From: Bugula neritina
Lineage: Eukaryota; Animalia; Bryozoa
Assembly: GCA_964035545.1 (NCBI GenBank)
Contig: OZ037765.1
Coordinates: 14,456,698 to 14,520,697 of the forward strand
Length of the DNA: 64,000 nucleotides
Reading direction: 5' to 3'
This document shows, piece after piece, positions 1 to 62,527 of this stretch. How positions within the stretch are numbered: the first letter of the stretch is position 1; each line of letters starts with the position of its first letter. The notes under the pieces are model-generated. The model was given only the letters and a program-made list of their open reading frames with translations, had not been told where the DNA came from and ran no database searches. Both the position numbers and the translations under genes were made by a program.

Positions 1-297
1 ATCAAACTTGTTTTTGCAGATGAGCCCAGTAAATGGGAGTTCATAAAAAGAACCAATGCAAAGGATACAAGGACTACAGGAGTTTTCTGCAAGCTTGATA
101 CCAGTAAAGAAATGCGTGATAAAGAATTTCAACTCCGTGATCAAATTCGCAGACTTAAAGAAGATGACGCGAATGCAAACAGACAGTACCGCATCAGAAC
201 CCGGGAAACGAAAGTTGGGATAGAAGAGCGACTCCAATCGGGGGAATGGCGCCCGCTGAACCCTGCTCTCAATCAAACAAAGGAGACAACATGCTAA
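1..297 (+). CDS. LINE ORF1 C-terminus (partial)
   Basis: Frame 1 is open from base 1 (IKLVFADEPSKWEFIKRTNAK...VFCKLDTSKEMRDKEFQLRDQIRRLK). Its stop TAA at 295-297 overlaps the ORF2 ATG at 291. Confidence 0.7.
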   Translation: MKLVFADEPSKWEFIKRTNAKDTRTTGVFCKLDTSKEMRDKEFQLRDQIRRLKEDDANANRQYRIRTRETKVGIEERLQSGEWRPLNPALNQTKETTC

Positions 298-5861: not shown

Positions 5862-15335
<9,474 letters not shown>

Positions 15336-15699: not shown

Positions 15700-18600
15700 T
15701 CAAAGTTCCTCGAAAAAAGCCACTCTGGATTTAGTAGAACCGGCGGCAGTCTAAAATAATAAAAATATTTGGTGAAAGTAATTTAGCATGAATGCATCTT
15801 CTCAGTGATGAACGTAAATTTATGCCAAAATAGCAGGCATTACTAACACCCTCCCCATACAAACCTTCTGTAGAGTTTGATATTTTGTGTCGCCTCTCTG
15901 CACATTTTCATCATGCAATCTATCAAGATGAGTCAACTTATCTTCCACCTTTAACATGTCCATGTCAGATTTGAGATTCTTGAGCTGAGCTTGTATACTC
16001 TCACTTCGCTCCATAAATGTCAGACTAGAAATATTGTTTGATGATGGCTAATTTATGATCACTGCATCAGAAAGTAAATTTACAGCTACATTGTAACTAG
16101 TTTTAAAGTATTGGTGAGATAACTTCATGCAAATGATGCTGTCTAACAATTTCAACTGTTAGCACTGCAATAAATGATCAGGAAATTTGTAAAACTAAGC
16201 AGGCGTACTTCTCTTGTTCCACAGCAAGCTTCAGCTGTGTCATATCTGTAGTGAGATAATCAATTTCAGCATCAGTGGCCCCGCTAAGTTGAGGATAAAG
16301 CTGAAAATACCATTAGTTGTGTGAATAGAGGAATTAATATGAAGGATACTAAGATTCATAGAGAATACACATTACAATTTCAAAGAATATTTTTGGATAT
16401 TAATATACTATTAACAATATAACAACTGGTTCATGCTATACTCACAAAGGTTATATTTGAAAGCAATGAATTTTAAGCTGCTGCATTAAGAATGTGATGA
16501 CAATTTAACAAATTCTAGAAGTTTTAATTAAACAGATTCAAGAGCAAGTAGCTATTCTATTCATGTAAAATAGCAAAATATATGAACATGGCTTCCAGGA
16601 GAGCCATTGGCTTGGCCAGCATGATGGTGAATCATAAATTCTTCTGTGTTGCAACAAAAACCTCCAAAACATGTGGTCCTTGCCACCGGGTTTATCATAG
16701 GGCTTAGGAGATTGAGAAGCTCAAGTAAGATGGCAAAATTAGCAACACATAGAAATATACAAACATTTGCCATTGATGTCAACTTTTTTTTAGCAATTAG
16801 TTCTGCTTCTTTTGCCTTTTCAAGTTCTTGTATCAAACGTTCCATCTCTTGAGCTCTCTGTTCAGAGTCTTCAAGGATGCGCGAAGCCAAAAGTTCTGCA
16901 TCTTTTGCCCTTTGTTCAACTACCAACTTTTCTTCTTCAGTCTAAAACCACAAATTTTTCAACACACATAAATTTATAGGTTTTTACAAGTTTACAGTTC
17001 ATAATGTAGCAAAGGTGATCAAACTAATATATATGTCAATTATTTTTAATGACAGGTTACAAAATTTAATAGTATACTATATTAGATACACTGATAACAT
17101 GTAGATATACTAATAACATGTAGATATACTGGTAACATGTAGATATACTGGTAACATGTAGATATACTGATAACATGTAGATATACTAGTAACATGTAGA
17201 TATATTGGTAACATGCAGATATACTGGTAACATGTAGATATACTAATAAAATGCAGATATACTGGTAACATGCAGATATACTGATAACATGTAGATATAC
17301 TAATAAAATGCAGATATACTGATAACATGCAGATATACTAATAAAATGCAGATATACTGATAACATGTAGATATACTGATAGCATGTAGGTATACTAATA
17401 AAATGCAGATATACTGGTAACATGCAGATATACTGATAACATGTAGATATACTGATAATATGTAGATATACTGGTAACATGTAGATATACTAATAACATG
17501 TAGATATACTGGTAACATGTAGATATACTGGTAACATGTAGATATACTGGTAACATGTAGATATACTGGTAACATGTAGATATACTGGTAACATGTAGAT
17601 ATACTGATAACATGTAGATATACTAATAACATGTAGATATACTGGTAACATGTAGATATACTGGTAACATGTAGATACACTGGTAACATGTAGATATACT
17701 GATAACATGTAGATATACTAATAACATGTAGATATACTGGTAACATGTAGATATACTAATAACATGTAGATATACTGATAACATGTAGATATACTGGTAA
17801 CATGTAGATATACTGGTAACATGTAGATATACTAATAACATGTAGATATACTGGTAACATGTAGATATACTGGTAACATGTAGATATACTAGTAACATGT
17901 AGATATACTGATAACATGTAGATATATCTGGTAACATGTAGATATACTGGTAACATGTAGATACACTGGTAACATGTAGATATACTGATAACATGTAGAT
18001 ATACTAATAACATGTAGATATACTGGTAACATGTAGATATACTAATAACATGTAGATATACTGATAACATGTAGATATACTGGTAACATGTAGATATACT
18101 GGTAACATGTAGATATACTGATAACATGTAGATATACTGGTAACATGTAGATATACTGGTAACATGTAGATATACTAATAACATGTAGATATACTGGTAA
18201 CATGTAGATATACTGGTAACATGTAGATACACTGGTAACATGTAGATATACTGATAACATGTAGATATACTAATAACATGTAGATATACTGGTAACATGT
18301 AGATATACTAATAACATGTAGATATACTAATAACATGTAGATATACTGGTAACATGTAGATATACTAATAACATGTAGATATACTAATAACATGTAGATA
18401 TACTGGTAACATGTAGATAATATACTGATAACATGTAGATATACTGGTAACATGTAGATAATATACTGGTAACATGTAGATAATATACTGATAACATGTA
18501 GATATAATGGTAACATGCAGATATACTGGTAACATGTAGATATACTGGTAACATGTAGATATACTGGTAACATGTAGATATACTGGTAACATGTAGATAT

Positions 18601-19573
18601 ACTGGTAACATGTAGATATACTGATAACATGTAGATATACTGGTAACATGTAGATATACTGGTAACATGTAGATATACTGATAACATGTAGATATATCTG
18701 GTAACATGTAGATATACTGATAACATGTAGATATACTGATAACATGTAGATATATCTGGTAACATGTAGATATACTGATGATATCAGCAATATCAAATGC
18801 AGTGAATTATACCAATAGCCAAGAGTACCAACCTTGATAGCTGTGTTCTTCACCCGGCCCATTTCTGCTTCAGCCTCAGCCGACTTCTCCCTCAATAATT
18901 GGTTCTCCTGCTCAATCAAATCAGACTTCTGGCCCAGAAGTTCTACAGTTTCTTCAGATCGCCTCTATTTTATAAAACAAGGCGTTTTGATATTATCACA
19001 TAGACCCATTATAAAAATACAATTACTAACAAGCTAAAACCTAAAACACCTAAATGGTGTTCAATTATCATTGCAGTCAGTCCATCTATGCCCAAACTTT
19101 GGCTATTGGGTCAAATTTAGTAAACTTTTAAATTTAATGTAACTCATTATGCATGATCAATAAAATAATATTTTAATGTACCGTGGAAAAAACAAGTGTT
19201 AAAATGTTTTTGTTAAAAAATGTCACTTCACTGCCTTGGTAAGAACTTGTCATGTACATATGGCATTTGTTCTTGAGACAAATTTGAGATGCTAAATCTG
19301 AAAACATCAGCTCACTATGCCAAATTTCTTCTCAACATATATTAATTTCATTTGAAGGCTGATCCAACTACAACTTCAAAAAATAAAACAGTTGAGGATG
19401 AAAACAGGCCATTCAATAATCTGCACTAGACATTAGAACTGGTGTCAATATGTGCAGCTCATGGTTGATATACTTTGCCACAGAACTCATCATCTTGATA
19501 TTGATTGCAAACCTCAATGGAACAGACTGGCTGGGACTTGCCATCAATGACTTATATAATATACCAGATATAT

Positions 19574-26095: not shown

Positions 26096-29000
26096 ATTTT
26101 CTTGAACAAGGACTTGACTGTTTGGACTGCCCTCTCAGCCTCTCCATTAGCCTGAGGATGCTTTGGTGAACTAGTGACATGGGCAAACTGGTAAGAAGAA
26201 ACAAACAACTTAAAACTCATGGCTGGCGTATTGGGGGCCGTTGTCCGAAACCAACATATCTGGAACACCATAGCGCGCGAAGATACTCCGCATGTGGCTA
26301 ATAACTTCCCTGCTGGTGAGTTCAGCTAACAAAGCAACCTCGAAAAACCTAGAATAATAGTCTACTACTAGGAGATACCAACGATTGTGAACAAAGAACA
26401 AATCACTACCTAACCTCCCCCAAGGACGCTGAGGAAACTCGGCTACCATCAATGGCTCTACAACAACGTTGGCGTGCATTCTGCAGGTGTTGCACTGGCG
26501 TACCATGTAAGCAATTTGCTGAGATATACCCGGCCACCAAACATATTGCCTGGCCCGAGCACGACACTTGGTCACCCCTAAATGACTTTGATGAATAGTC
26601 CGAAGAACTTCCAATCTCTCAACCTGTAGAATAACAATGCGGTCCCCAAGCACCAACAACCCATTTTGAATAGAAATCAACGATCTTGACTTAAAATAAG
26701 GGCGAAAAAGTATATCCTTATTGGTAAGGTATTCCGGCCATGAGGTCTCAACAAACTTAATAACTTGGGCCAAGACTTCATCAGCTCTTTGCAGCTTTGC
26801 CAACTGCACGAGCCTCTAGCTAGAAGCAAACGACTTATGACTCTCCTTCACGGCCAACTCTACTTCCTCCTCAAAAGCCACTTCATCCACACTGGGCGAA
26901 GCCTGGAGCGGGATAATGCATCTGCAAGCACATGATCCTTACCAGCAATGTGTTCAACGACATACGCAAACTTCATAAGCCTCATCCTGAAACGCTGAAT
27001 GCAAACAGTCAGTTTATCCAGTTCAATTTCATTCCGTAATGGGATCAAAGGCTTGTGATCAGTCTGCATCTTGACTGTGATACCTGTAATGTAATTTCTA
27101 AACTTAGTACATATCCACACAACCCCCAGTGCCTCCTGTTCGATGGTTACATACCTCTTCTCAGTATCAGTCAAAGCACAAGAAGCTGCTGCAACCACCC
27201 TCTTGGAACCATACGGCTGAAGCTGCAGCAATACAGCACCGATGCCATTCCGGCACGCATCAGTCTGTATAGTGGTCTCAGCCTTCGGGTCATAACCTGC
27301 AAGAACGAAATCCCTCGTTTCAGAACCAAGGAGACGTCTTACACAAGTCGCTAAGAGGTTTAGATAGCTCCGCCAATTTAGGGGTAAACTTACTCAACTG
27401 ATTTGCCATGCCCAAGAAGCTACGAACATCTGAGACACTCCGAGAAGTTCTGAAATCTCTAATCCTTTGAACTGCCTCAGGGTTGGCTTGAATGCCTTTA
27501 TCAGAAATTGAATGCCCTAGAAACTTGATTGAACTTTTAGAAAATTCAAATTTGGAACTGTTCATAGTCATTCCTGCATCAGACATGCGTCTGAGGACAG
27601 CCTGAACTTTAGCATCGTGTTCCTCCACAGTATTGCCCCAGACACAAACATCATCCATATGGACAATAACTACTTCTAGACCACAAAGAACCTGTGACAC
27701 AACTTTGGCATAGCTCTCTGGGCTAGATGATAGCCCAAACGGCAACCTATGATAAGCATACCGACCAAACGGGGTCAAAAATGTATTAAGGAGTTTACTA
27801 GACTTGGACAGGGGTATCTGATAAAACCCAGAGTTCGCATTCAACTAGCGGAAAACTTTTCTATCACCTAGTTTAGCTAGACTAGAGTCGCATGGGCCAT
27901 TGGGTATACCTCCCTCCTGACTACTTTATTCAACTGAGTGTAGTCTACACATATACGAATACAACCACTTGCTTTGGGGACTATAACCATGGGTGAGCAC
28001 CAATCAGTTGGTTCACTAACAGGGAAGATGACTCCTAAATCTACCATTTCATCTAACTCAGCCTTCACTTTATCTAATAATGGATACGGCACAGAACGCG
28101 AAACACAAATAGCATAGGGGGGAGGGGGGACCGGTGTTTACTTGAATCTCTGCCTCCTGGCTCATTTTACCTAGGCCAGAAAAAAGACTAGGAAACTCAT
28201 TTCTAAACTTATCAGCACTTTCAGTAACATAATCAAGTTGGGTATTACATAATACAAGACCTACGCCTACACATGCACGTCTACTAAACAAAGCTTTATT
28301 GTGAGCTACAACATATAGTCTATCTGCTACTTTGTGCTTGCCTACAGATAGTGTACTGTCAAAATAGCCTAACACTGATATCTGACTTTTACTCGGTCCA
28401 AACAATGCCTTGTCTGGCTGTTTAAGCGGTACTGACTTACAAAGCTGCTTCAAGATGATGGTAACATCTGCACCGGCATCTAACTTGAATCGCACAGGCA
28501 CCAATAGTTGATCTATGACTACAGACTTTGTCCATTCAACGTTAGCGTCTCTGTCTGTTACTTCACCCAAAAACTACTGTCCTTTGTTGCAGGGTTCAAT
28601 GTTGCTAGTGGACTGGTCATAATCGTTCTCTTCCATAGATTGTACTGCTCCTCTTTTTGATCTGCACACTCTAGCAAAATGTCCTCGCTTTTGGCATTTG
28701 TGACACACGGAATTTTGCACGGGACATTTGCCAAATCTGTGTGTGTTGTGGCCACATCTACCACATGGATTAGCATCGGCTTGAGCTGATTTAGCTGCTT
28801 TACTCTGTTGGGTTGAATGTTTATGTTTACTACCGCTGACTCTTGCCGCATCGAGCGATTTCACATCATTGTATAGCTCCTTTACATTTTTGTCCACTTG
28901 CTCTGCTTGTCTAGCCATGGCCACGGCTGTTGCTTCAGTTAACTGGCCAATGTCCATCTTTTGCATCTCACGGCTTAGCCCTTAGTCAGCTATACCAACA

Positions 29001-31368: not shown

Positions 31369-32518
31369 TCAGTCTTGATCGCCCCGTTTGAGGAGGGCCA
31401 CGGAAGCTTTAAGGGTCTTCATTTCGGAAGTGGCTGCAGCAACTCTGGGTGTCAACCGTTGAATCTCAGCTTCTAATTCGTACATACGGAGCTCGACTTC
31501 TTTTATGTTGCGGGCTGTAGGGGGCTGCCGTTTCGGGGAGGAGGGTCTCCATCACCGTTTAGAAGAAGGCTGCATAGGAGTGGGGGAAGGGGAACGTCGT
31601 TTTTGGGGTATCTCAACTCGGTGAAGTAGAACTCGAGGTAGGGTGGAGGGACGAGGTATGGTCTGTGCGGGAGGAGAGTGAGATGGCTTGGTAGGTTTCT
31701 TACGTCTGGGAGGTCTTGGACACGGTCCATGAGTGATGATGCGAGGTGAGGGGAATCCGTGTTTGAGCCGTTCAAAGCGGGGGAGATCCTTAATGAAAGG
31801 TTTGATCAGATTGAGAAAGGTGGGGAAGTTGTATTTGTCCACATCGTACAAGTGTCCCACATGGCAGTCCATAGTACGCTGATGTCTGAGAATGTAGTCC
31901 CTGTGGTAACTATATTCACCACAGGGACAGAGAGTAGTTAGGAAGTGCTGCGGTACGTGGACGCGCAAACGGCGATGGGTGGAGAAGTGCTGCTGACACA
32001 GCCTGCAGGTGGTACATCCAGCATGGCCGCGGTGTAGTTGAATCAGCTGTTCTGTCTCTGGTGCGACCCAGCTATGTTGCTGAAGTAGCACGTCTGGTAG
32101 GGAGGTAGGAGGTGTCTCACTATTCCAGGCCAGTTCTAATGGTGGCATATCTCCGTAGTTAGGAGAGCGAGTGGCGTCTAAAAGAGCAGAATTATTGTTA
32201 GATCGAGTTTGATCTTTACAGCATAATTCTGATGACAATCGACTGTTATTAGTCTGAGAGTCGTGCATCTTTTTATACGGCACTCGAGAGACTGTGTCAG
32301 AACGTGTAAACTGACTGAGAGACATATTATCAAGCTCCAGATCTAGTAGATCATCCGCCATTACTATGTTCTCGTCGTCATTCATGTGTGACTCTGTCTC
32401 CAGTAACTGTGATTCAATCAGATCGATTAAATCAGAGTTGACTGAGGTGAGATCTATTTCCATTAGTGGAGTGTTAGATCTAAGCAAGCTTACCTGGGAA
32501 TTCGGTATTTATACTCAT
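31369..32518 (-). CDS. E1 accessory gene ORF3, predicted spliced (32494-32518 + 31369-32177): double zinc finger plus coiled coil, ~277 aa, one internal TGA
   Basis: Micro-exon MSINTEFP(G)|GTAAG. Acceptor CTAAC..TCTGCTCTTTTAG|AC joins in frame. Fingers CRLCQQHFSTHRRLRVHVPQH and CPCGEYSYHRDYILRHQRTMDC. The frame continues past TGA 31552-31554 into IKEVELRMYELEAEIQRLTPRVAAATSEMKTLKASVALLK. Confidence 0.7.
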
Positions 32519-32548
32519 ACTCGACGTTCAAGCTTGGATGCAGATGGG

Positions 32549-35500
32549 TTAGAAAGCACGTCTACTCTTGACCGCGTCGGCGTAGGAAAAGGCTGGGCAG
32601 CGTGTTTGTTGTGCGAGACCGGAAATGTGTGCCCGGAGAGTGGTAATTCCACTCGCTATTCCGTTTTCGCAAAACTTGGTTTTTCCGTGGTGTTCATAAC
32701 TCCCACGCTTTGCTGCCAGTGCCAGTCTTTCCGTACGGCGCCCAGCTGGACTTTCATACCTGCCGCTTGTAATGCGGTCGCATACGAAGTCTTGAAGATA
32801 AGCTGGGGGTCTTCTAGTACGTTGTCCCCTTTCAAGGAGGGGAGATGTACTAGTGGTAGACGCCGGGGAAGGTGGTGTAGCTGGTGAGGGAGGTGGTGTA
32901 CCCACCAGTGGGTTGTTATTCTCCACTGGTGGTGTTTCCTGCCTCCCGTCAGCTGTTATTCCTTCTTCCCCTCTGTTCTCTCCGGACGGAGCCCCTCCCG
33001 TGTGGGGGTTTTGCACTTCCGGAAGTATACTTATTTCCGGAAGTGGTGGTGGCAGCTCTGGGGTCGGACGGCTTGGCTCTGGAGGCAGAGGGTGTGGCCC
33101 CATTGGGGGAGGTGGCCTCTCTTGCCTTGCCAAGTCTTCTGTCCGTGGCATAACCCACTCATCATTGGGTGTATGCCGCCGCCCGTGCATCGTTGTCTGC
33201 CTCCTGGGCTCTAACAATGGGGGGCACCCCCGGCCGCACCTGGGCTAGCCCAATAGGGTTTCAAGCGGGCTTCATTCTGGACAGATACTTGTCCAGACCG
33301 CTCCAACTTGTAAGTGTGATTGGGCATCACTTCAACTACCACGTAGGGTCCTACAAACTTAGGCTGTAGTTTAGCCGCCTGTCCTCGACGCCTACGGTAG
33401 TTGATCATCCAGACCTAGTCTCCGGTCTGGTAGAGGGGTGGCTCATCAGCGTCTTCCTGTCGCACCTGCCACTGCTTATCCCGCAGTATTTCGTGTGCGA
33501 CTTTCAGACGCTCTATCAATTCCCCATCGTACTCGTGGACAGAGTATCCTGGTTCTGGAATATAATAGGCGAGGTGGTCGGGCACTCGTGTCTCACGACT
33601 GAGTGTCAAGAGGTTGGGGGTCTCGCCGGTGCTGGTATGTGGCGTGCTGTGGTAGGCCCGCATGACCTGCGGCAATACGAGATCCTACTCCTCCTGGCCT
33701 CGGCCGAGTAGTAGACTGCGGAGTGCATCGCCCGGCATCCGGTTGTTGCGTTCGACCACTCCGTTACCCTGAGGATGGTATGGAGTGGTCCTACTTTGGT
33801 TTACTCCCCAGAGGCGACAGAGGTCGCTCATCAGTTGAGGCTGGAATTGCGACCCCTGGTCCGAGTGTAGTTGCTCGGGCAACCCAAAGTAGCAGAATAC
33901 ACGCTGGTCTAGTGTGCTGGCCACTGTCGGGGCAGACGCATCCGGAATGGCCAGTGCGTCGGCCCACCTAGTGAAGTGGTCGGTCAACACTAGAATCCAG
34001 CTGTTTCCTCTGGGGGTGATGGGCATGGGTCCGACCAAGTCAACAGCTACCACCTGCCAGGGCCTACAAGCATATAGCCTACGCCATCCCGCCTCCCTGG
34101 GGAGACAGCCATGCTTGCTGGCCTGGCAGATTTCGCATTGTTTGATCCTTAGGCGGATGTCACGCTCCATATTGGGCCAATACCACCGGAGCCTTAGCTT
34201 GGTAAGCACCCTCCGAACTCCGGCGTGAGCCTGTCGGTGAGTGTCCCATACTAGCTCCCGGCGCATGGCGGTTGGGCAGATCACCCTTTCTCGACCAGGG
34301 TGTCCCTGGTCGGCGGCCAAGGTGATGGTCAGCAGACCATCTGGCCCGATCCGCAGAGAGTCCCAGCGTTGGCAGTACAGCCGTAACTCGGCGCACCCCT
34401 GCCGCAGCTGTTCTTCGCTGGGTCGTCGCTCTTCCCGTTTAGCTCGATATATGTCGGCTACCACCCCAGGGAGGTCCTCCTGGAGTTTCTGCAGCTCTCT
34501 GACATCACGAGCTAAGACAGGGTTGGTGCGGAGGTTGTTGACAGCCTCCGGTGGGTTAAGACTCCTTGGTTTGAGTTGACCTTGGTCCGTGTCGTAGCTC
34601 ACTCCAGGGTGGTCCAGTGTCGCCAACTCGGATCTTGGGGGACCCCCATCCCTTCTCTCGATGTTGTGACACTGTTTGCACCCCTCGTCCGGCCGCCGAC
34701 TCAGTCCGTCCGCAGTGCCGTGTTTTCTACCGGGTCGATGTTCGATCCGGTATGAAAATTCGGCTAGGACTTCGAGCCATCGGGCGACTTGACTGGACGG
34801 TTCAGCTCTCTTACACAGCCAGATCAAAGAGGCGTGGTCCGTCCGCAAGCGGAACGGCCTACCATAGAGATAAGGCCGGAAGTGTTTCACTGACTTGATT
34901 ACTGCCAGCAACTCCTTGCGAGTGGTGCAGTAATTGCACTCTGGGGGTGAGAGTGATTTGCTGTAGCAAGCTACGACTACTTCACGGCCTTCTTGCACTT
35001 GCTACAGCACAGCGCCAACGTTCTGGTCACTGGCGTCAGTGTCAAGAACGTACTCCAGAGCGGGGTCTGGGTAGGCTAGAATTGGAGCCTCTAGCAAGCG
35101 GCTCTTGAGACTGTCAAATGCCCTTTGTTCGTCGGACGTCCACTGCCAGGTCACTCCCTTTGCGGTGAGCCGATTTAACGGCTGTGCAACCCCCGCAAAG
35201 TCTGGTATGTATTGTCTGTAATACCCTACCAGCCTCAGGAAAGCCCGGAGTCCGGTCAAATCCTGGGGGGTGACCCAGTCGGTCACAGCCCGCACCTTAT
35301 CGGGGTCCTTTGCCACGCCATTACGGCCGACTACGTGCCCCAGGTACTTCACCCCCGGCTGCAAAAGAGCGCATTTGGAAGGTTTGAGCTTGAGACCGGC
35401 ACCTCGGAGTCGCTCGAAGACCTCCCGCAAACGACTGACATGGGTCGTGAAGTCTGGGGAGATCATGATGACATCATCGAGGTAGACGAGCAATGTTTTC

Positions 35501-37883
35501 CAGTGGAGGCCGCTGAGAACCTGTTCCATGAGCCTCTGGAAGGTAGCGGGAGCAGAAGTTAACCCGAAGGGCAGTACCTTCCACTTCCACAACCCGTCTC
35601 TGGTGATGAACGCCGCTTTCTCCTGGGCGTCGGGACTGAGGGGGACTTGCCAGTAGCCACTCAGCAAGTCTAAAGTACTGAAGTATTTGCTGCCGGCTAA
35701 GGCGCCCAGGGATTCGTCGATCCGAGGTAGAGGGTAGGCGTCCTGTATGGTTACGCTATTAAGCTTGCGGTAATCCACACAGAACCGCCAACTGCCGTCT
35801 TTCTTCCGGACCAGAACGACCGGCGAGCTCCACGCACTATGTGCAGGCTCTATGAGGCCGCGGTCCAGAAGATCCCGGACTTGTCGGCTGACCTCCTTCT
35901 CCTTCTCTGGCCCCAGTCTCCGGGTGGGTTGGCGGATAGACAAAGTCCCGGCAGCTAGCGGTATCTCGTGACGGACGGCTCTAGTCAAGCCCACGTCCTG
36001 GTCTCCGCTGCTGAACACGTCCCCATACTGGCGCAGCAACTGGGCCATAGCTTGGCGCTCCTTGTTGCCCGCACAGCCTTCACAGGCTGACTGGTATAGT
36101 TCTTGGACGTGTTCCGGGACGGTCCCCCACCGTACAGACGGGCGCTCTTGGGGACCCTCCCTCGCTTCGCCCAGCGACGGTCCTATGTCTCCCTCTTGGA
36201 CCGCATAGAAACGGCCCAATAGGGATCCAGACGGTAGTGTCACCGACTCTGAAAAGGGGTTGACGCACTGCACCAAGATCTCCCCTCGGTCAGTCAGCCG
36301 ATTCAAGCTGCTGGCGAGTTGGATTCTCTTGTGCGTTCCTTCAACGACCCCTAGTCCAGAGAGTTGGCGGTCATTCACTCTGCAGTGAATGGTCGCCCGG
36401 GAGCGGCCGGATACCGTACAGTTACGGACCACCTGCACACCCCGACCAGGGGGCGACCGAACTTATCGACACAGGAAAGCTCCCGGCCTGCCATTAGTAT
36501 GGCGGACTTGTGGAAGTCCATGTGGCACTGGTGTCGCTTCAAGAACAGCGTCCCCAGGATAGCGTCCTCTTCCAGCTGGCTGAGGATAAAGGTTTCCTGG
36601 ATGGCCTGGTCGCGGACGCGGCCAGGCAGCTCTACAACACCGTAGAAGGGGATACGCGACCCGTCTGCGAGGGTGCCAGGTTCCCCGGTGTAGGGAGCTA
36701 ACCCCTTCCTCACCTGGGCAGGGAGGGCATCGAAGACTCGTCTGCTGAGGAGATTCGTGTTGCAACCGAAGTCTAGCAAGAACGTGACGGCCTTGCCGGC
36801 TACCTCCCCGGGCAGGAAGTAGCTTTCTCCATGCGGTTGCAACCTTACTTCCCCAGCATGCGTAGCCTCGGTCAAACGGCGGGGTGTCCGTTTGGTGGTC
36901 TGCTGGCGCCGCTTCTTCGGCGGAGGGGTGTTTAATCCCCCTCCGATGTCCCGAGGGACATCGCCGGCCAGCTCCGTCTCCGGTAGCTGGCTGAAGCGGT
37001 TGGTGATTGGTAGGACAAACGGCTCCTGTCGCCCGATAGGGCGGATGGTCCGTCGTGGTATCTGCCATTCACGGGGTACATCCCGTGATTGCTCCCTCTT
37101 CCGCCCGCGGGGCCTCTTTCTGGGTTGGGGGTCTCCGGAGCGGGGAGGCCCTGGCTTGTCACTTTTCCTACTCCGGGTAGTCTTCTCCGAGGTCTCTCCT
37201 TGTTGTCCTCAGTTAGGGGGCCCGGCATTGGTAAGGGTCTTTGCCACCCGCTTCAGTCTGGCGCTCAGCCGGCCCATCTTCTCCCCGAGTGATTGGGCTA
37301 TCTCCGTGGTGACTTGTGTGCCTTCTGTTTTCCCTGTATATAACTGCTCGGCCCGGAGGTAGTCTTCCCCGACTTGTAGGGCACTTTCTAGAGTGGTCAC
37401 TCCCTTTGCCTGTAGTTGATGGCAGAGACCCACATCTTTTAGGGATTGCATGAAGTCAATGAGAGTAAAGTTCCGTCGGTGTGCTTCTGGCAGGTCGCTG
37501 TACGCGCTCCGTGCCAGTCTCTTCACTAAGGCAACGTGGTCGCGGAGCGGAGTGTCTTCCGCCTGGCGTAGCACTTGTAGACGGGCCCTGGCTTCCAGAG
37601 TGGAGGTGCCAAAACGGCTCCGTAGTGTAGTGAATATCTCCGCCACGCTCCGTCCTTGTCCGAATGGTCTAGCGCACTCCGTCAATACTTCCCGCAGCTT
37701 GACGAGGGCTACTTGTGGCGGCCATTGAGCGACATTTGCTACATCGTGGAATTCCTCAATGAATTGCTCTACATCTTCTACACCCGTGAAGGTGGGAGCG
37801 GTCAGTTTATCTCTATACACCTCCTCCATATGCAAGAAATTGGCTGGCTTACCTCCCGGGTGTTTTGTGCTGTGTTCTGTCAT
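32549..37883 (-). pseudogene. E1 gag-pol with stops and frameshifts
   Basis: Gag APTFTGVEDVEQFI; PR LLDFGCNTN; RT RFCVDYRKLN and YLDD; RH DTDASD and TDHASL; IN HAG..CEIC, HSDQG, PQGNGVVER; GPY/F module KLQPKFVGPY. Confidence 0.93.
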
Positions 37884-52883: not shown

Positions 52884-53188
52884 ATAATAACTACTAGCAA
52901 ACGCTGGAACTGTCACTTGATCGGAAGTTCATTTTCCGGCCCTTCTCATTGGATAATATAATGTGGCCTTTAGTATTGTAGTAGTTTCGTGGGTTATAGA
53001 ATGAAATCAGGCAGAGAACATAACTCCTTGTTATAGAAGAGACAAGAGAGAGAGGTTGCCGTGTGCTTGCAGTACTTTGTTGTAGTAGAGAGAAGTATCC
53101 AGTGTGAGCTCCAGTCCGCAAGTGGCTGAAGCTCTAAAATGCGTGTCCTTTTATACCAGTGGAACAAAGGACTTCTAGAACCTTCTAC

Positions 53189-53410
53189 CGACAGTGGGCC
53201 GATGTTCGACAGTGGGCCGATGTTCGACAGTGGGCCGATGTTCGACAGTGGGCCGATGTTCGACAGTGGGCCGATGTTCGACAGTGGGCCGATGTTCGAC
53301 AGTGGGCCGATGTTCGACAGTGGGCCGATGTTCGACAGTGGGCCGATGTTCGACAGTGGGCCGATGTTCGGCAGAGGATACCGACATTCGACAGTGGGCC
53401 GATGTTCGGC
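53189..53410. repeat. 18-bp tandem array (~10 perfect copies plus variants) in the U3-like part of LTR B
   Basis: Unit CGACAGTGGGCCGATGTT. Confidence 0.95.
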
Positions 53411-55002
53411 AGAGGATACCGACATTCGTCATGTCGGTAACCGACACTGGAAATATCGGTAACCGACATTCGGTCTGCCTGCATCCACCTGCCGAAATTG
53501 GTCCAACTGTCGGTTTAGATGAATCAGCAAAAATGAACCCAACCAAGTGTATGCGTATTGTAACTTATAATTGGGGAAAGGGGATTAACTGTTTACTATG
53601 CCAAAGGCTTAATAATAGCCATAGTATTTAAGGTATTAGAAAGTTACGCCACAGACTTAGCTATAACTACAGTATTTAGAAAAATAGCCATAAGTAATGT
53701 GTCAAGGGGGATAATTCTTATTATTTACCACAGTATTCCCCCAAGGGAGAGGAGATGATTCCATATTATTATACTACGTAACCCATTACAATATCTCGTC
53801 ATTATTATTATGGACTTGGCGTAACGTTTTAGATGCTGTTAAATGTTGTAGTTATAGCTAAGCCTAGCTTTCTAATGCCTTAAGTATCGTAATCATAGCT
53901 AAGCTCTCAGCGTAGTGAATAGCTCAATGATTGTGAATTGCCCTTCCTATTTTATTGTTTGTTTATAAAATACTGTAACAGTTTTTGTTGAGTTGTATTC
54001 CCCCCACTTGTTTTGTTATAATCTTTGATAAGTTGTGTGAACCGAAGTTCGGCTGAAATCGGAGCCCGGAAACGCTATTTCGAACAGATTTGTCCGATTT
54101 CAGCAACCGGCACTCCGAATTTCGGACACCCAAAGTGGCCGGAAATTTTGTTGGTATATAAGTGGGAGAGTTTCCAGTGCTAAGTCAGTCAAACACTGGA
54201 GCTCAACCAAGACGCATCTATAGAAGAATAAAGGCACTTATATCAAGAGTATTCAAGAAGGCTTTTATTTGATCAACATAGTATAAGGCATGCAGACTGC
54301 TTAGTATATTTCATAATAACCCACAAGTTTATTATGTTATCTTTTTCAGTATTGTGGGTTTAGGGTGCAATCAAGTTACTTTATAGCACGTAATCTAAAT
54401 CAACTCCGCAAGTGTGGTTAAGGTTACAATAATATATTTATACAGTAATACACAATACAACTACATCTATAAAACACATTAACAACTACTCAGCACAGTG
54501 TTTACAGTTTGCCAGTCTACTCCTAACTAACTGTTACCCTGGAAGTCACAGTTCCTAATTATAGTTCATGATTCCTATTGGCGAATTGCTGTCTCGGGTC
54601 ATCTTCGTAATACACTTAGTGACCCCGTGCTGCACTTAGAAGGGAATTAACATTTCCTCCTTCTCCGTTATGATCGTAGCTCCTCGAGCCACCACACCGC
54701 CCCCACCAGCAGAAAGCCCACTTTCTGATAAAAAAATACACTCCCTCGTACAGTACAGAATATTATAAAAGCAGTTACATAATATAGGACATATATACAT
54801 AAATGGCGACAAAAACATAATCATTACAACAAGAACAAGGTACACACAATTTATCAGCTATAGAAAGAAAAGTAGTGCTAACTATAGTGGTAGCCAAGGA
54901 AGAGGAAGTAACAGGCATTTGCATGATCATAATGTTGTACATTGGGATTTCCCAGGAAGGGCGAAATTCACAGATATGTCCCGGGGACAAGGACTATTGT
55001 CA

Positions 55003-56048
55003 TTATTTAAAGAGCCGATGCTTAGTCTGGCGGGCACACAGTCTCCGTTTTATTCTTCCCACCGAATTCTTAAGCTGGTACATCCCAGTCGTTGTGTTTA
55101 ACAAGTCTGGGGCTAGTTGCGTGAAGTCGGCCTGTAACCGAAGGGGTTGCTCCTCTATTCTGGCCAGATGGGTTGGGCGGTCCGGTGGTGGAGTCATAGC
55201 CTTCCGGCGGGGGAATTCTAACTCTTCTTCCATCTCCGCGGAGGTTGGTTCATCAGAAGTGGGTAGGATTTCGAGCTTGTCTGCTATCATGGAAGACTGC
55301 TGTCGGGCATACTTTAGTACATGCTGGAATTCCAAGGTCTGGAGGGCTAGCACCAATGCCTTCCTTACTAGGAGCCGGATGGGCGTTAGAAATTCTGGAT
55401 ACATGTCGGCATCCACAACATAGTTCTCCCTGGGATAGCATCCAGCAGCTCTATGTTTAATGATCGGGCATGGGTAGACATCGTGATGTCCGCATGGGCA
55501 GAAGGTCAATAGAAAGTGCGCATCTACATGCGTCTTAGGGAGCGGTGAAACGGCCTATCCTTATAGCAGATTTGACATCGGGTACTCCTCTTCGGTCCCC
55601 ACGCAGCCTCTATTTTCTTCTCTGTTGCTGGTGACATCCACCGCCAACAGCGGCACAGTGGTCTTGGTAGTCTGCCATTTGCTTCTTCCTCTATGGGTGA
55701 GGTGGAAGGCGGTCGGTCCCTTACCCTGGTGGTAGCGGGTTGAGTGTAACCTGAAAGAGTTCAACAGTGTTAGTAGCATACACTGAAGTGTTGCTGGCAT
55801 TAGACAGCCTGACAGGTTCTCATTCAGTTAAACACTTGAGAGATTTATGTTGGTGATTAGTTGGAAGGGAACACACACTGCAGTGGAAAATTGTTAAATC
55901 TCTAAGTCAATCTGTGTTCCTACCACTGTATTTCACTAGTCTATCTCTAGCTCAATTGACTCAGTCGTGTCGGAGTTGAGTGATGCAATCTAGTTTCCAT
56001 ACCAAAAGAACGTAGTTACTCACCCCATGATCCGGTATCGTATGACAT
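55003..56048 (-). CDS. E2 accessory gene ORF3, predicted spliced (56024-56048 + 55003-55750): double zinc finger plus coiled coil, ~257 aa, one 1-nt frameshift near 55530
   Basis: Micro-exon MSYDTGSW(G)|GTGAGT. Acceptor TACTAAC..AACTCTTTCAG|GT joins in frame. Fingers CQICYKDRPFHRSLRR/HVDAH and CPCGHHDVYPCPIIKHRAAGC. C-terminus LARIEEQPLRLQADFTQLAPDLLNTTTGMYQLKNSVGRIKRRL. Confidence 0.7.
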
Positions 56049-56073
56049 ACTGAATATTTGAAAATGGTTTGTA

Positions 56074-59000
56074 CTAATGACTAGTGGCACGTCTGCTCTT
56101 AACTGCATAAGCGTAAGAAAAGATCGAGCAACGTGGTTGGGGTGTGTGACTATGACTTTGCACACCCGGCGGATGAATTTTATTTCTAGTTTCGCCAATG
56201 TAAAAGTTGATATTTCCGTGGAGCTCACAACTCCCACAATTGCCCGATAGTTTTCCCGTACAGTTCCCCTCTAGACTTTCATACGTGCCGCTTTGAACGC
56301 GGTCACATACGAAATCTTTCAAATTCGCTGGGGGTTGTCTTGTACGCTGTCCTCGTTCCAGGGGAGGTGGAGCACTCACTGGTGGACTATCAAGTTGTAC
56401 TGGCAGTGCTTCTGGTCCCCTAGTAATCGTTTCCTCTTCATTCTCTCCGGATGGAGCTTCTCCCTCCGTGGGGGTTTGCACTTCCGGATCCGGCTCGGGT
56501 TCTGGAAGTGATGGCGTCAGACCTGGCGTTGGAGGCGGCGGACCCACTTCTGTGGTGGAAGTGGTCGCTCGTCTCTACCAAGTCTTCTTCCCGCGAGATG
56601 ACCACCTCATACTCAGGTCCATACCGCCGCCGACGCGTTGTCGTCTGCCTCCTGGGCTCCAACAACGGGGGCTTCTCCCACTGCGTCTGGGCTAGCCCAA
56701 TACGGCTTCAAGCGAGCCTCATTCTGGATAGACACCTGTCCCGAGCGCTCGATCTTGTAAGTATGGTTGGGCATAGCCTCGACTACCACATAGGGCCACA
56801 CAAACTTAGGCTGTAATTGACCATCCACACTTAATCTCCTATCTGATAGAGGAGTCCTCACGCCGCACCTGCTACTGCTTTTCCCGCATCATTTTGCGTG
56901 CGACCCTCATCCACTCTACCAGTTCACTGGCATACTCGTGAACTGAGCTATCTTGCTCGGGAACATGGTAGGTAAGGTGGTCAGGGACCCGATTCTCCCT
57001 CCCGAGCATCAGGAGGTTTGGGGTCTCGCCAGTGCTGGTGTGTGGTGTGCTGCAGTATGCGCGCATGACCTGCGGCAATACCGTATCCCATTCCTCCTGA
57101 CTATGCCCGAGGAGTAGACTCCGGAGCGCATCACACAGCATCCTGTTGTTGCGTTCTACCACTCCGTTACCTTGAGGGTGGTAGAGAGTGGTCCTGCTCT
57201 GGTTCACTCCCCAGAGGCGGCAGAGGTCGCTCATCAGTTGAGACTGAAACTGAGCGCCTTGGTTAGAATGTATCTGTTTGGGAAAACCGAAGTAGCAGAA
57301 TACATGTTGATCCATCACCCCGGCCACTGTCGGAGCCGATGCATCTTGGATTGCCAGGGCGTCGGCCTACCTAGTGAAGTGGTCGGTTAATACTAGGATC
57401 CAGCTGTTGCCTCTAGGAGTCAGGACATGGGTCCGACCAGGTCGACAGCTACCACTTGCCACGGCTGTCCAGCATATAACCTTCGGCATTCTGCTTTACC
57501 AGGGAGACGACCATGCTCACTGGCCTGGCAGATCTCACACTGCTTCACTCTGAGTCGAACATCACGCCCCATCTTGGGCCAGTACCACTGGAGTTGCAAT
57601 TTGGAGATCACCCTTTGGACTCCTGCGTGAGCCTGTTTGTGAGTGTCCCAAATCAATTCATGGCGTATGGCAGTGGGACAGACCACCCTCTTCTTCTCAG
57701 GGTGTCTGCTGTTGGCGGCTAGATTAATGGTCAGCAGACCATCTTGCCCGATCCTCAGCGAGTCCCAATGCTGGCAGAACAGCCGGAACTCGGCGCATCC
57801 CTGCCTCAGTTGTTCTTTGCTGGGTCGTCGCCCTTCCTTTTTGGCCTGATACACGTCTGCCACCACCCCGGGCAGGTTTTCTTGAAGCTTTCTCAGCTCT
57901 CGGACGTTATCAGCCAAAACAGAGTTGGTGCGGAGGTTTTGCACAACCTCCGAGTGCTCGTCAACCACCTGCTTGAGTTGACCCTGGTCCCAGTCAAACG
58001 CTGCTCCATGGTGAGCCAGTGTCTCTAACTCAACCCGTGGGAGACCTCCTTCCCTCTTCTCGATGTTGAGACACTGTTTACAACCCCCATCAGGCCGCCG
58101 ACTCAACCCATCCGTATTGCCGTGCCTCCTACCCGGTCGAAGTTCGCTCCGGTAAGAAAACTCGGCTAGGATTTCGAGCCACCGAGCAACCTGACTGGAC
58201 AGTTTTGCTCTTTTGCACAACCAAATCAAAGAGGCATGATCCGTACGCAGCCGGAACTTCCTGCCATATAGATAGGGTCGGAAGTGTTTTACTGACTTGA
58301 TCACTGCCGGCAACTCTTTTTGGGCAGTGCAGTAATTTTGTTTGGTTATGGTTGCGAGAGACTTGCTGTAGTAAGCTAATACTACTTCATGGCTTTCCTG
58401 CACTTGCGACAACACAGCGCCAACATTCTGGTCACTGGCTTCCGTGTCGAGGATGTACTCCAGAGTGGGGTCTGGGTAGGCCAAGACGGGTGCCGTCAGT
58501 AGGCAACCCTTGAGGCTGTCGAACGCCTGTGGTTTAACCGGGGTCCACTGCCACGCCACTCCCTTTGCAGTGAGCCAGTTTAACAGCTGTGCTATCCCCG
58601 CAAAATCTGGTATGTATTGCCTGTAATACCCTACCAGACCCAGGAAAACCCAGAATCCGGTCAAATCCTGGGGGGTGACCCAGTCTTCTATAGCCTGTAC
58701 CTTCTCAGGATTCGTTACCACGCCGTTTCGACCGACCACGTGCCCCAGGTACTTAACCTTCGGCTGCAACAGAGCGCACTTGGAAGGCTTCAGTTTCAAA
58801 CCAGCACCTCTGAGTCTTTCGAAAACCTCCCTCAGACGACTGACGTGTGTCTTGAAGTCTGGGGAGATCACGATGACGTCATCGAGGTAGATCAGCAGTG
58901 TCTTCCAGTGAAGTCCACTCACGACATGTTCCATCAGCTTCTGGAAGGTGGCCGGGGCGGAGGTCAACCCAAATGGCAGCACGTTCCACTTCCACAGTTC

Positions 59001-61420
59001 GTCCCGTGTGATGAACGCCGCCTTCTCCTAGGTGTCGGACTCAGAGGGACCTACCAGTAACTGCTCAACAAGTCTAACGTACTGAAGTACTTGCTGCCGG
59101 CTAGGGCGTCCAAGGATTCATCAATACAAAGTAGAGGGTAGGCGTCCTGTATGGTCACGCTATTGAGCTTGCGTAGTCCACACAGAACCGCCAACTTCCG
59201 TCTTTCTTCCAGACCAAAACGACCGGTGAGCTCCATGCGCTATGGGCTGGCTCTATAAGGCCGCGGTCCAGAAGATCTCGAACTTGTCAGCTGACCTCCT
59301 TTTCTTTCTCCGGCCCCAACCTGCGTGTGGGTTGCCGAATAGGAACTGTCCCTGCAGCCAGCAGCATCTCGTGTCTGACAGCTCGTGTCAGTCCCACGTC
59401 ATGGTCTCCGCTGCTGAACACATCACCATATTCGCATAGCAACTTTGCCACAGCCTGGCGTTCCTTGTTGCTCGCTCAGCGGTCACAGGCCATCTCATAC
59501 AACGCCTGGATGTGTTTTGGGACAGTCCCCCGCCTTTTTGGCAGGCGCTGTTGGGGACCCTCCATCGTCGTCCCCAACGACGGTCTTACGTCTTCTTCTT
59601 GGACAGAGTGGAAACGGCCCAACATAGACCCTGCCGGTAGCTTTACCGGCTCCGTAAAAGGTTGACACACTGCACTAAGATCTCTCCTCGCACAGTCAGT
59701 TAATTTAGGCTGCTGGCGAGTTGGATTCTATCGTGTGCACTTTCCACCACCCCTAGTCCGGAGATCTGGCTACTGTTCACTCTGCAGTGAATAGTAGCCC
59801 GGGAGCGGCCCGGTATTGTACAGTTCCGTACTACCTGCAAGCCTTCCACTAGAGGACGGCCGAACTTGTCGACACAGGCTAGTTCTCGCCCGGACATCAT
59901 CATTGCAGACTTACTGAAGTCGATGTGACATCAGTGCCGTTTCAGAAACGGCATCCCGGGGATAGCATCCTCTTTGAGCTGACTGACGATAAACGTCTCT
60001 TGGATAGCTTGATCTCGGACGCGTCCCGACAGCTCAATTATACCATAGAAGGGAATGCATGACCCGTCTGCCAGGGTGCCATACTCCCTGTCGTATGGTT
60101 CCATCTCGTTCCGGACCCTAGCGCTGAGGGTGTCAAAGAGTTGGCGATTTATGAGGTTCGTGGTGCAGTCCAAATCGAGCAGGAAGGTAACAGCTTTACC
60201 TGCTATCTTGCCGGGTAAGAAATAGCTGTTCCCATGGGGCTGCACCTGTACTCTCTCTTTGTGCCGTACTCTTGCAGGGAGCACCTCTCTCGCTTTAGGT
60301 CGGGGAGTTAGTGGTTTGGGACGGTTATAGGGTGACCTCGGAGGAGGGGGGTAGGTTTCCTGGCGCCTGTACTGGCCCCATTCCAATTCATGGGCCAGTA
60401 GCCCGTCGAATCTATTGTGGAGTGGCATAGAGAAGGTAACAGCGGGGCGGAACCCCTTACCTGTCCGTCGTGTCTTCTGCCACTCCTGATTGTTAGCACG
60501 TGATACCCGTCTGGGTGACCTATGTTTCTTAATCCCTGGGGGACTCATCGCCGGCCCGCAGGAGGCGGGAACATCTGCGGGCCGCGGTAGTTTAATCCCG
60601 GAGCAAGAAGAGGGCAATATCTACAGAAATGTCCTTGGTTTCCACATTCCCAGCAAAAACTGACTGCCTCCCCCGGTGGCAACGCTAGCGGCCGTGGAGG
60701 CTCGCAGGCGGTACCTACTGGAGTTTTGTGTGTCAGTGCCGTCACCAGTTTAGCCAACATGTCGGTCAATTGGGCGACCTTCGATGCGGCTGTTAACTGT
60801 CCCACGGCAGCGGCCGCGGGGCCTTTGTCTCTAGATCAGCTGGAGCGACTGTGGATTCTACTTCCACCTGGTGGGAAACCCCCGCGGTTCCTATGCATCT
60901 GGTTTGCCAGAAAATAGGCTTCCCCTTCTGCGAGGGCGCCTTCGACTGTGGTAACTCCCCTAGCTAGAAATTGATGGTGGAGTCCTAAGTCGTTGACAAA
61001 TTGTACAAAGGCATCAAAAGTATACCGTTCACGGTTAGCTTGAGGCAGATCGCTGTATGCAATCTGTGCTAGCTTCATCACCATGGCGGCATGTTCTTGT
61101 AGCGGGGTGTGAGGATCACGCTGCAGCCTTTGTAGTCGGGCGCGGGCGTCTATGGCGGAGATGCCAAAACGGGCCCGCAGAGAAGCAAAGATACTGTCGA
61201 TGTCCGGTCCTAACCCATAGGGCTTGGCCTTATCTATCAACGACATTCTAAGCTTCAGCAGGGCCACCCTAAGTGGCCATTGGGTGATGTCCATCACATC
61301 ACTAAACTCCTATATGAATTGTTCCACTTCTTCTTCACCCGTGAAAGTTGGTGCCTTTAACCGGTATCGATCCTCATTCAGCTCCCTCGGAGCTCTTCGC
61401 TCTTCTACTACAGGATTCAC
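56074..61420 (-). pseudogene. E2 gag-pol with stops and frameshifts; gag start approximate
   Basis: Same domain order as E1. Fragments include 57420-58982, 56872-57327, 59931-60617 and 60836-61297. Confidence 0.92.
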
Positions 61421-62527
61421 AGGAACAACATTATCTCCACGCTCACCTTCTATCGGCTGTGGTGGTGTTCCAGCATCGTCAGTCTCCATCGTTGATATAC
61501 ACAGCTTATCCCACCGCTGCCACCACTGTTATCTTTTTCAGTATTGTGGGTTTAGTGTGCAATCAAGTTACTTCATAACACGTAATCTAAATCAACTCCA
61601 CAAGTGTGGTTCAGGTTACAATAATATATTTATACAATAATACACAATCCAACTAAATCTATAAAACACATTAACAACTACTCAGCACAGTGTTTACAGT
61701 TTGCTAGTTTACTCCTAACTAACTGTTACGCGGAAAGTCACAGTTCCTAATTATAGTTCATGATTCCTATTGGCGGATTGCTGTCTCGGGTCATCTTCGT
61801 AATACACTTAGTGACCCCGTGCTGAACTTAAAAGGGAATTAACATTTCCCCCTCCTTCGTTATGATCGTAGCTCCACGAGCCACCACACCATTACAATAT
61901 GTTAATTATATAGCTAAAGTATATGCTATCAGTTTGTAACATTTATGTAACAGACCTGAAGGCTAGTAAGCACTCAACTCCAATGATATACCACATTAGT
62001 AGCAGAAGTAAAAATATCTAGCATGTCTAAAAGAAATACTTTGCTAAACTTGAGAAGCTCTCCGCATAATGGTAATTAACACAGCTCTATACTTATAGAA
62101 TCTAGTCAAATTTCAATACATTGTAATTATATATTACCATATACTTCGAAACACAGCAGGAGCTTCATTTTAAAAGTTAACACACTTGTTTATGCATACA
62201 GCTGTAAAGCCTATTAGTAGTAGCTTTCAATGTTTTCTGTATATTTTATATTTATGTTTTGTAGTGTACATACATTGCTCCTAACTCGCTTCAATATAAT
62301 ATACAGTGTGAACAATACCACGTTTTGATTGTGCCAGAACAGGGCTATTAAAAAGTGGTAAAATCCGTGTAGGTCAGGACTATATGAAAATCACCAACTG
62401 CAAAATTGTTTTGTGTGCATGTCATATTTTTATGGCGCTTTTGCTTTCACCTTATAAACATATACATGCACAACACTTGGTCATGCAAATTATTTAAAAT
62501 TTTAAATGTACATCATGCATATTCTGG

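Follow-up and report, generated by a model that had tools for sequence, protein, structure and literature searches.

A zinc-finger third gene with a conserved micro-exon layout and a constrained putative intron in a Ty3/Gypsy lineage of the bryozoan Bugula neritina

Rev/RRE and Tas/internal-promoter circuits pair a small, multimerising nucleic-acid-binding regulator made from spliced RNA with a cis element that is spliced out of the regulator's own mRNA. We analyzed a 64,000-nt stretch of the Bugula neritina genome (assembly GCA_964035545.1, contig OZ037765.1, positions 14,456,698 to 14,520,697, forward strand; hereafter the window), in which a Ty3/Gypsy element on the minus strand, E2, carries a third open reading frame (ORF), ORF3, downstream of pol. 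A second Gypsy element in the window, E1 (~38212-30745, minus strand), carries a related ORF3 and served as the comparator. The likeness to Rev/RRE and Tas would lie in a regulator-type protein paired with a conserved cis element in the spliced-out part; there is no homology, and E2 is an endogenous Gypsy element without env. The closest precedent for ORF3 is CERV of Cer1, a Ty3/Gypsy element of Caenorhabditis elegans. CERV is an accessory protein made from a spliced mRNA and required to export unspliced genomic RNA; it is 517 aa long, is encoded by five exons, three of them common to gag, and contains G-like and M domains, a Cys-rich putative zinc-binding loop, a leucine-zipper-like helix, and basic motifs (PMC10309623). 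ORF3 resembles CERV in several features: a predicted spliced mRNA, a Cys-rich putative zinc-binding part, a helix, basic motifs, and an element that would have to export RNA still carrying usable splice sites. It differs in its size (~255-365 aa), in a 25-nt first coding exon just past pol, and in two C2H2-type fingers, and splicing and function are experimental for CERV and inferred for ORF3. Non-env ORF3s of invertebrate Gypsy-like elements include those of Juno, Vesta, and TelKA in bdelloid rotifers, which are varied, specific to their families, located after pol, and generally from spliced messages. The types reported are GDSL lipase, DEDDy exonuclease, transmembrane/env-like proteins, and coiled coils; that paper lists no zinc-finger type and describes no conserved micro-exon or intron (PMC5408684). 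A 2026 survey of env-carrying Gypsy elements includes bryozoans, and neither zinc fingers nor splicing came up when its text was searched by term (PMC13524379). Here we report that the ORF3 of E2 is a zinc-finger gene under selection, within an old defective Gypsy copy, and that its second exon probably receives its start codon by splicing from a 25-nt micro-exon.

The last E2 pol ORF ends with a stop codon at 56076-56074 (minus strand, as for all E2 features below), and a 25-nt spacer (56049..56073) separates it from the ORF3 ATG at 56048. Exon 1 (56024..56048) is exactly 25 nt long, encodes MSYDTGSW plus a single G, and leaves phase 1. It is followed by a GTGAGT donor (56023-56018) and a putative intron of 273 nt (55751..56023), which contains a TACTAAC branch point (55775-55769, with the branch A 19 nt ahead of the AG) and ends in a TTTCAG acceptor (55756-55751). 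Exon 2 (55003..55750, phase 1) runs to a stop codon at 55005-55003, with its frame broken near 55531. The E1 counterpart (31370..32518, minus strand) has the same layout, with exon 1 at 32518-32494, a GTAAGC donor, a 316-nt "intron" at 32493-32178, and exon 2 at 32177-31370. The initial annotation had described the distance from the pol stop, the micro-exon, the donor, and the phase-1 intron with its branch point and acceptor in E2, and each proved correct to the base. It had also placed a Trp at comparable positions in the two proteins, and the Trp of the W-[VM]-S-P motif is indeed residue 38 past the junction in E2 and residue 37 in E1.

To examine whether this layout is retained, we searched the assembly, which yielded 29 usable copies of the E2 family, at 73-87% identity to the window copy, and 29 of the E1 family, at 72-98%, out of roughly 230-450 in the genome. 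The splice features were scored copy by copy in place of a family consensus. The ATG was present in 27 of the 29 E2-family copies and in all 29 E1-family copies, exon 1 was exactly 25 nt in 28/29 copies of either family, the donor GT was likewise found in 28/29 of each, and the acceptor AG was found in 26/29 and 29/29, respectively. All four features occurred together in 24/29 E2-family and 28/29 E1-family copies. The exact TACTAAC was found in 18/29 E2-family copies and a YTRAY motif in 25/29. Intron length took 11 values between 262 and 276 nt in the E2 family; in the E1 family it was 316 nt (16 copies), 317 nt (11 copies), 320 nt (one copy), or 288 nt (one copy). Insertions and deletions (indels) hit the spacer that precedes the ATG, as well as the beginning of the intron, and spared the micro-exon. 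Three metagenome contigs with E2-like ORF3 proteins of only 49-60% identity were also examined. The ATG, the 25 nt, and GTGAGT were kept in two of them (L068 and L069), the third had an insertion within exon 1, and the TTTCAG acceptor was kept in all three; the splice signals persisted in metagenome relatives with ORF3 protein identity as low as 49-63%. These results established that the splice signals are conserved: in both families, the ATG, the 25-nt length, the GT, and the AG persisted far more often than chance would allow.

An AG was also observed one base ahead of the micro-exon ATG, as TTCAG-T-ATG (56049-56053) in 24/29 E2-family copies and as TCGAG-T-ATG (32519-32523, minus strand) in 24/29 E1-family copies, and therefore the 25-nt exon could be an internal exon with its own acceptor.

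We examined the coding pattern of exon 2. The mean pairwise identity by codon position was 0.79, 0.85, and 0.65 in one half of the E2 family and 0.75, 0.83, and 0.51 in the other, and it was 0.83, 0.89, and 0.62 in E1, third positions being by far the least conserved. The ratio of nonsynonymous to synonymous substitution rates (dN/dS) was 0.06-0.31, at dS of 0.4 to >2, among copies without an internal stop, and it was 0.07 at dS >2 between E2 subfamilies. In several copies with as little as 73-76% identity to the window copy, exon 2 was uninterrupted by stops. The frameshift near 55530, which the initial annotation had said would count against the gene if fixed in all copies, lies within the first zinc finger and was a single-base deletion found in the window copy only; the nearest relative was broken at another place, and the breaks were private to single copies. 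The gene and its selection are therefore established: exon 2 of ORF3 is a genuine gene on which purifying selection has acted over the long term.

In the E2 family, exon 2 has no conserved start codon of its own. In unspliced E2-family DNA, a stop codon 4-61 codons upstream of the AG closes the exon-2 frame, and the first in-frame ATG, which differed in almost every copy, lay anywhere from codon -43 to codon 131 or was lacking. A coding pattern (0.81, 0.83, and 0.73 by codon position) was nevertheless seen in the E2 family over the initial 37 codons of exon 2, all of them ahead of any usable ATG. Only one ATG is conserved in the family, and it lies 25 nt ahead of the conserved GT. The E2-family intron contained 3-11 stops in every frame in all copies and showed no codon periodicity. 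Because exon 2 lacks a conserved start codon and the intron has stops in all frames, E2-type exon 2 most likely needs the splice.

The predicted ORF3 protein contains two zinc fingers (55438..55577), C-x2-C-x12-H-x3-H and then C-x-C-x12-H-x4-C, and a C-terminal amphipathic helix with a basic tail (55006..55161). The initial annotation had noted a common finger motif and C-terminal amphipathic helix, and both were present in E1 and E2, the helix and tail being conserved between them. The E1 and E2 proteins are 31-33% identical and have in common the motifs W-V-x-P-x-T-E, C-x2-C-x12-H-x3-H, F-C-P-C-G ... H ... C, and V-D...Y-P-x-F-L, as well as a Pro/Ser/Arg-rich linker. In an alignment of 19 sequences, which takes in two modules of one Watersipora protein, 11 residues were invariant. 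Seven of these are metal ligands, and the one remaining ligand of the eight, a His, was found in at least 90%; the C2H2 ligand pattern of finger 1 was invariant. An AlphaFold2 model from the family alignment consisted of a globular domain of ~130 residues, built around a C2H2 and a C2HC finger (mean predicted local distance difference test score, pLDDT, 92) followed by a disordered linker rich in Pro, Ser, and Arg, and the model of an E1-type protein had a long helix at residues 224-265 (pLDDT 87-89). A premature in-frame stop (31554-31552, minus strand) was observed before the C-terminal helix in the E1 ORF3 of the window, where other E1-family copies read through.

Sequence and structure searches related only the fingers to described proteins. 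A sequence profile searched against PDB matched HIC2 at E 1.1e-5 and the fingers of HIC2, SALL4, ZBTB, and CTCF at E 1e-5 to 1e-2, and the two-finger core aligned with DNA-binding tandem C2H2 structures with Z ≤3.6 and a root-mean-square deviation of 2.4-2.7 over ~50 residues. ORF3 shares the C-x2-C-x12-H-x3-H spacing with HIC2, SALL4, Kaiso, and CTCF, but its second finger is C-x-C ... H-x4/5-C and its fingers are embedded in the 130-residue helical domain. Structural neighbours were found for the two-finger core only, and the 130-residue domain had no full-length structural match. Foldseek with the whole protein against PDB returned nothing at E ≤0.001, a wide fold search with the whole model returned generic long helices only, and ESM Atlas returned generic C2H2 neighbours only. 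Pfam gave nothing above threshold on ORF3, with zf-C2H2 and zf-C2H2_4 at E 0.006-1, under their gathering cut-offs. No env family was matched in Pfam, although transmembrane prediction was not separately run; the model, with its zinc-finger domain, disordered linker, and one amphipathic helix, does not have the layout of an env glycoprotein. Searching 1.8 billion representatives with a profile gave 296 clusters (50% identity), 41 of them at E ≤1e-30 and one with a Watersipora subatra protein among its members; the cluster members checked were named "uncharacterized protein" or "hypothetical protein" only. Judged by its fingers, basic linker, and helix and by the constrained intron, ORF3 most likely encodes a regulator that binds nucleic acid and acts on the expression or RNA handling of its own element.

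Named relatives of the ORF3 family were found only in Watersipora subatra, and the others came from a few host-associated metagenome samples. The W. subatra protein XP_067940964/XP_067940963, annotated as "uncharacterized protein", contains two tandem ORF3 finger domains and a C-terminal coiled coil and may be a domesticated or chimeric derivative.

The intron evolved slowly in both families. Its median pairwise distance was 0.131 in E2 and 0.039 in E1, compared with 0.226 and 0.185 for pol third positions, 0.452 and 0.401 for exon-2 third positions, and 0.227 and 0.344 for the 3' untranslated region plus the long terminal repeat (LTR), respectively. In both families it changed 3-10x more slowly than the synonymous sites next to it, and within each family the intron was the best-conserved segment of the 3' half of the element, with the drop in conservation located precisely at the AG acceptor. 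This constraint on the intron is established, and since both families show it, the segment probably serves as a cis-acting element as well. The initial annotation had stated that the intron bodies of E1 and E2 show little similarity; the alignment was indeed weak, but homology was detectable (global score 134; shuffles 98 +/- 9; z ~4). The intron and the ORF3 protein thus behaved alike, both being constrained within a family and diverged between E1 and E2.

In E1 the corresponding segment is itself an ORF. The E1 "intron" at 32493-32178 doubles as an ORF from an ATG at 32462, and it contained no stops in the exon-2 frame versus 10-16 in the other frames. In nine diverged E1-type sequences, the distance from the internal ATG to the acceptor was exactly 285 nt (95 codons), with no indel and no stop, and the dN/dS of this ORF was ~0.3-0.6. 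At least 14 metagenome proteins begin at the E1 internal ATG, with an acidic N-terminus (M-E-x-x-L-T), and unspliced E1-type elements could encode a long protein of ~364 aa. E1-type elements still keep the ATG, the 25 nt, a GTAAGC that runs into a stop if left unspliced, and a TCTAAC...TTTTAG that does not vary. In the 27 bases ahead of the E1 AG, synonymous change was nearly absent, even where overall copy identity is 72%. Because the segment is a conserved 95-codon ORF, splicing in E1 would be at best alternative, not obligate, and the pattern fits an alternative, retained intron. The initial annotation had taken the matching layouts of E1 and E2 to indicate long-term selection on a spliced accessory gene. 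Selection on exon 2 and the retention of splice signals across the families agree with this, but the E1 segment is not an equivalent obligate intron.

We compared the two families over the rest of the element. The initial annotation had presented E2 as a divergent Gypsy with LTRs unrelated to those of E1. The LTRs indeed showed no significant similarity (local score 98; shuffles 83 +/- 8), but the primer-binding site (PBS) is identical and pol is 73-85% identical at the DNA level, so E2 represents a sister family of E1, not a distant one. The third positions of ORF3 exon 2 were ~2x as diverged among copies as pol third positions (55003-55750 vs 56300-57327 in E2; 31373-32175 vs 32900-34056 in E1), and pol and exon-2 distances were weakly correlated among copies (r ~0.1-0.5). 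Either the 3' module, from exon 2 to the LTR, was swapped between lineages, or pol synonymous sites are constrained. An antisense ORF of 173 aa on the plus strand of E1 (32366-32887) was considered and rejected, as E2 has no plus-strand ORF of ≥60 aa at the matching place (~55900-56290). A fusion of integrase to ORF3 by splicing was likewise rejected: pol here ends in a stop ahead of the micro-exon, and the sole phase-compatible GTGAGC in the E2 pol tail (56228) has no E1 counterpart.

Taken together, we favor, with moderate confidence, a reading in which E2 is an old defective copy of a Ty3/Gypsy lineage with a third gene between pol and the polypurine tract, and in which the E2-type ORF3 is a selected zinc-finger gene. 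Removal of the ~270-nt phase-1 intron in the E2 family would allow the 25-nt micro-exon to supply exon 2 with a start codon; the intron, under strong nucleotide-level selection, would act as a cis-acting signal carried on unspliced genomic RNA only. In the E1 family, alternative splicing would produce a long isoform with an acidic N-terminus and a short isoform.

Several observations weigh against this reading. The occurrence of splicing, the choice of donor, and the function of the protein are inferred. None of the 58 fetched copies (29 E2-family and 29 E1-family) was intron-less. A search of public sequencing runs returned one run that contains the stretch, most likely DNA, and no RNA run. 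Contigs of this run matched the intron-containing form at 80% likeness and included no copy without the intron, and the joint 55750^56024 was absent among the joints listed; as a picture from DNA contigs, this speaks neither for nor against splicing. An intron more conserved than its exon is unusual and equally suits a non-spliced regulatory element. RNAalifold on 28 E2-family introns found no covariation (term -0.57), almost all pairs being invariant and hence uninformative. The segment reads as an ORF in E1 and the relatives of E1. In L062, a more remote relative, ORF3 is a single contiguous frame that starts with Met followed by E-F-P, like the E1 micro-exon peptide, and no compatible splice is possible; this suggests that the ancestral ORF was continuous and that the intron arose inside it. 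Finally, in one E2-like metagenome subfamily (L068; P0074, P0226, P0233, and others), an ATG lies four codons before the acceptor and the proteins start with MFSDYTR or MLSDYTR, so that this subfamily could translate exon 2 unspliced.

An alternative that we consider doubtful accepts the acceptor at 55751 and places the donor just past the gag start, in the style of retroviral env or Cer1 cerv. Exon 2 would then continue in frame from a few gag codons, and the micro-exon would be a conserved upstream mini-ORF or an optional internal micro-exon, which the AG one base ahead of its ATG in 24/29 copies of each family would allow. A candidate leader/gag-proximal donor, AG/GTGAGC, is present in E2 at 61441..61446, 43 nt past the first ATG (61489) downstream of the PBS, and counting on the sequence placed an E1 counterpart, AG/GTAAGC (37847-37852, minus strand), 31 nt past the likely gag ATG. 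Both candidates are in phase 1, as exon 2 requires, and GTRAGC-type donor hexamers are scarce on the sense strand (seven in E2 and four in E1). The gag-proximal AG/GTRAGC of E2 (61446) and E1 (37852) could thus be a retrovirus-like major splice donor, and CERV has such a build (PMC10309623). However, this alternative is based on two sequences only, and it leaves unexplained why the ATG and the fixed 25 nt persist across the families despite indels in the spacer and the intron.

It is less probable, and in our view unlikely, that no splicing occurs and that the ~270-nt stretch is a conserved cis-acting element, such as an internal promoter or a packaging or export signal, with translation of exon 2 initiating internally or at a non-AUG codon. 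Retention of the GT and AG would then follow simply from that of the whole block, whose identity from the pol end to the acceptor is 0.83-0.95, so that conserved signals by themselves are weak evidence for splicing. The open frame with its own ATG in E1-type elements, the ATG right before the acceptor in the E2-like subfamily, and the lack of intron-less DNA among the copies and contigs examined would all fit this explanation. It is opposed by the 37 coding-like codons at the start of E2-family exon 2, which lie upstream of any usable ATG, begin a few codons past an upstream stop in many copies, and have no conserved ATG. It is also opposed by the fall in conservation precisely at the AG and by an exon 1 that is free of indels when its neighbours are not. 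The remaining explanation, that the E2-type ORF3 is a decaying, functionless remnant of a longer E1-type gene, is highly improbable: although the window copy is frameshifted and every E2-family copy has stops that close the homologue of the E1 N-terminal domain, it is already contradicted by the substitution pattern (dN/dS 0.07 at dS >2 between E2 subfamilies), by the open exon 2 of copies 73-76% identical to the window copy, by the invariant metal ligands, and by breaks that are private to individual copies.

Splicing of the micro-exon to exon 2, our preferred reading, may be extended, speculatively, to a self-contained regulatory circuit in a non-env bryozoan Gypsy lineage. In such a circuit the zinc-finger protein, made from spliced RNA only, would recognise the constrained intron, carried by unspliced genomic RNA alone, and control that RNA's export, packaging, or splicing, in an independently evolved arrangement like that of Rev/RRE or CERV. 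We regard the circuit as a tentative idea that is more likely wrong than right. If it is true, intron retention in E1 adds an acidic N-terminal domain and gives a second isoform, and the joint divergence of intron and protein between E1 and E2, whose pol is ~80% identical, represents family-specific co-evolution.

E2 has the direct LTRs, the PBS, and the polypurine tract of a Ty3/Gypsy (Metaviridae) element and extends from a 5' LTR at 61888-61527 to a 3' LTR at 54696-54335. Both LTRs are 362 nt long, the 5' LTR (61527..61888) with TG...CA ends; for the 3' LTR (54335..54696), conservation among copies fell to background below ~54340. Pairwise alignment of the two LTRs gave 94.5% identity, with 20 mismatches and no gaps, and E2 is therefore an old insertion; the E1 LTRs are 87% identical to each other. 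The PBS (61508..61526) adjoins the 5' LTR and is the same 19-nt string as the E1 PBS (37901-37883). The gag-pol region (56074..61489) is split into several ORFs and contains reverse transcriptase (RT), RNase H, and an integrase zinc-binding domain. Pfam matched RVT_1, RT_RNaseH, RT_RNaseH_2, and Integrase_H2C2 in the E2 ORF at 57420-58982, and the domain order across the E2 and E1 ORFs was RT, RNase H, and integrase (Integrase_H2C2, rve). The 3' untranslated region (54697..55002) ends in a polypurine tract that abuts the LTR, and the E1 tract is similar. An Rfam scan of 54300-62000 found nothing.

The window is AT-rich animal DNA (~30% G+C) that contains a non-LTR retrotransposon ORF, satellites, and three GC-rich Gypsy-type elements. 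The non-LTR ORF (246-3014, plus strand) looks intact, encodes 922 aa, and by eye has an endonuclease-like N-terminus and RT motifs. The third Gypsy-like element (26210-28966, minus strand) belongs to another family and has gag (CCHC), protease-like, RT, and integrase pieces over five ORFs. Tandem arrays were observed at 53153-53404, 8014-8733, 9905-10614, and 17082-18919; one array, with an 18-nt unit in ~14 copies, lies just outside the E2 3' LTR, and the longer satellites translate as repetitive peptides.

Accessory genes set "complex" retroviruses apart from simple retroelements, and few have been studied outside vertebrates, CERV of Cer1 being the clearest. ORF3 is part of a large uncharacterised family, and for annotators, ORF scanning alone misses an ORF3 of this kind. 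With its clear domains, purifying selection, conserved splice layout, and an intron more constrained than its exon, to which the sister family adds an intron that is still coding, this lineage offers a tractable system for the balance between spliced and unspliced RNA.

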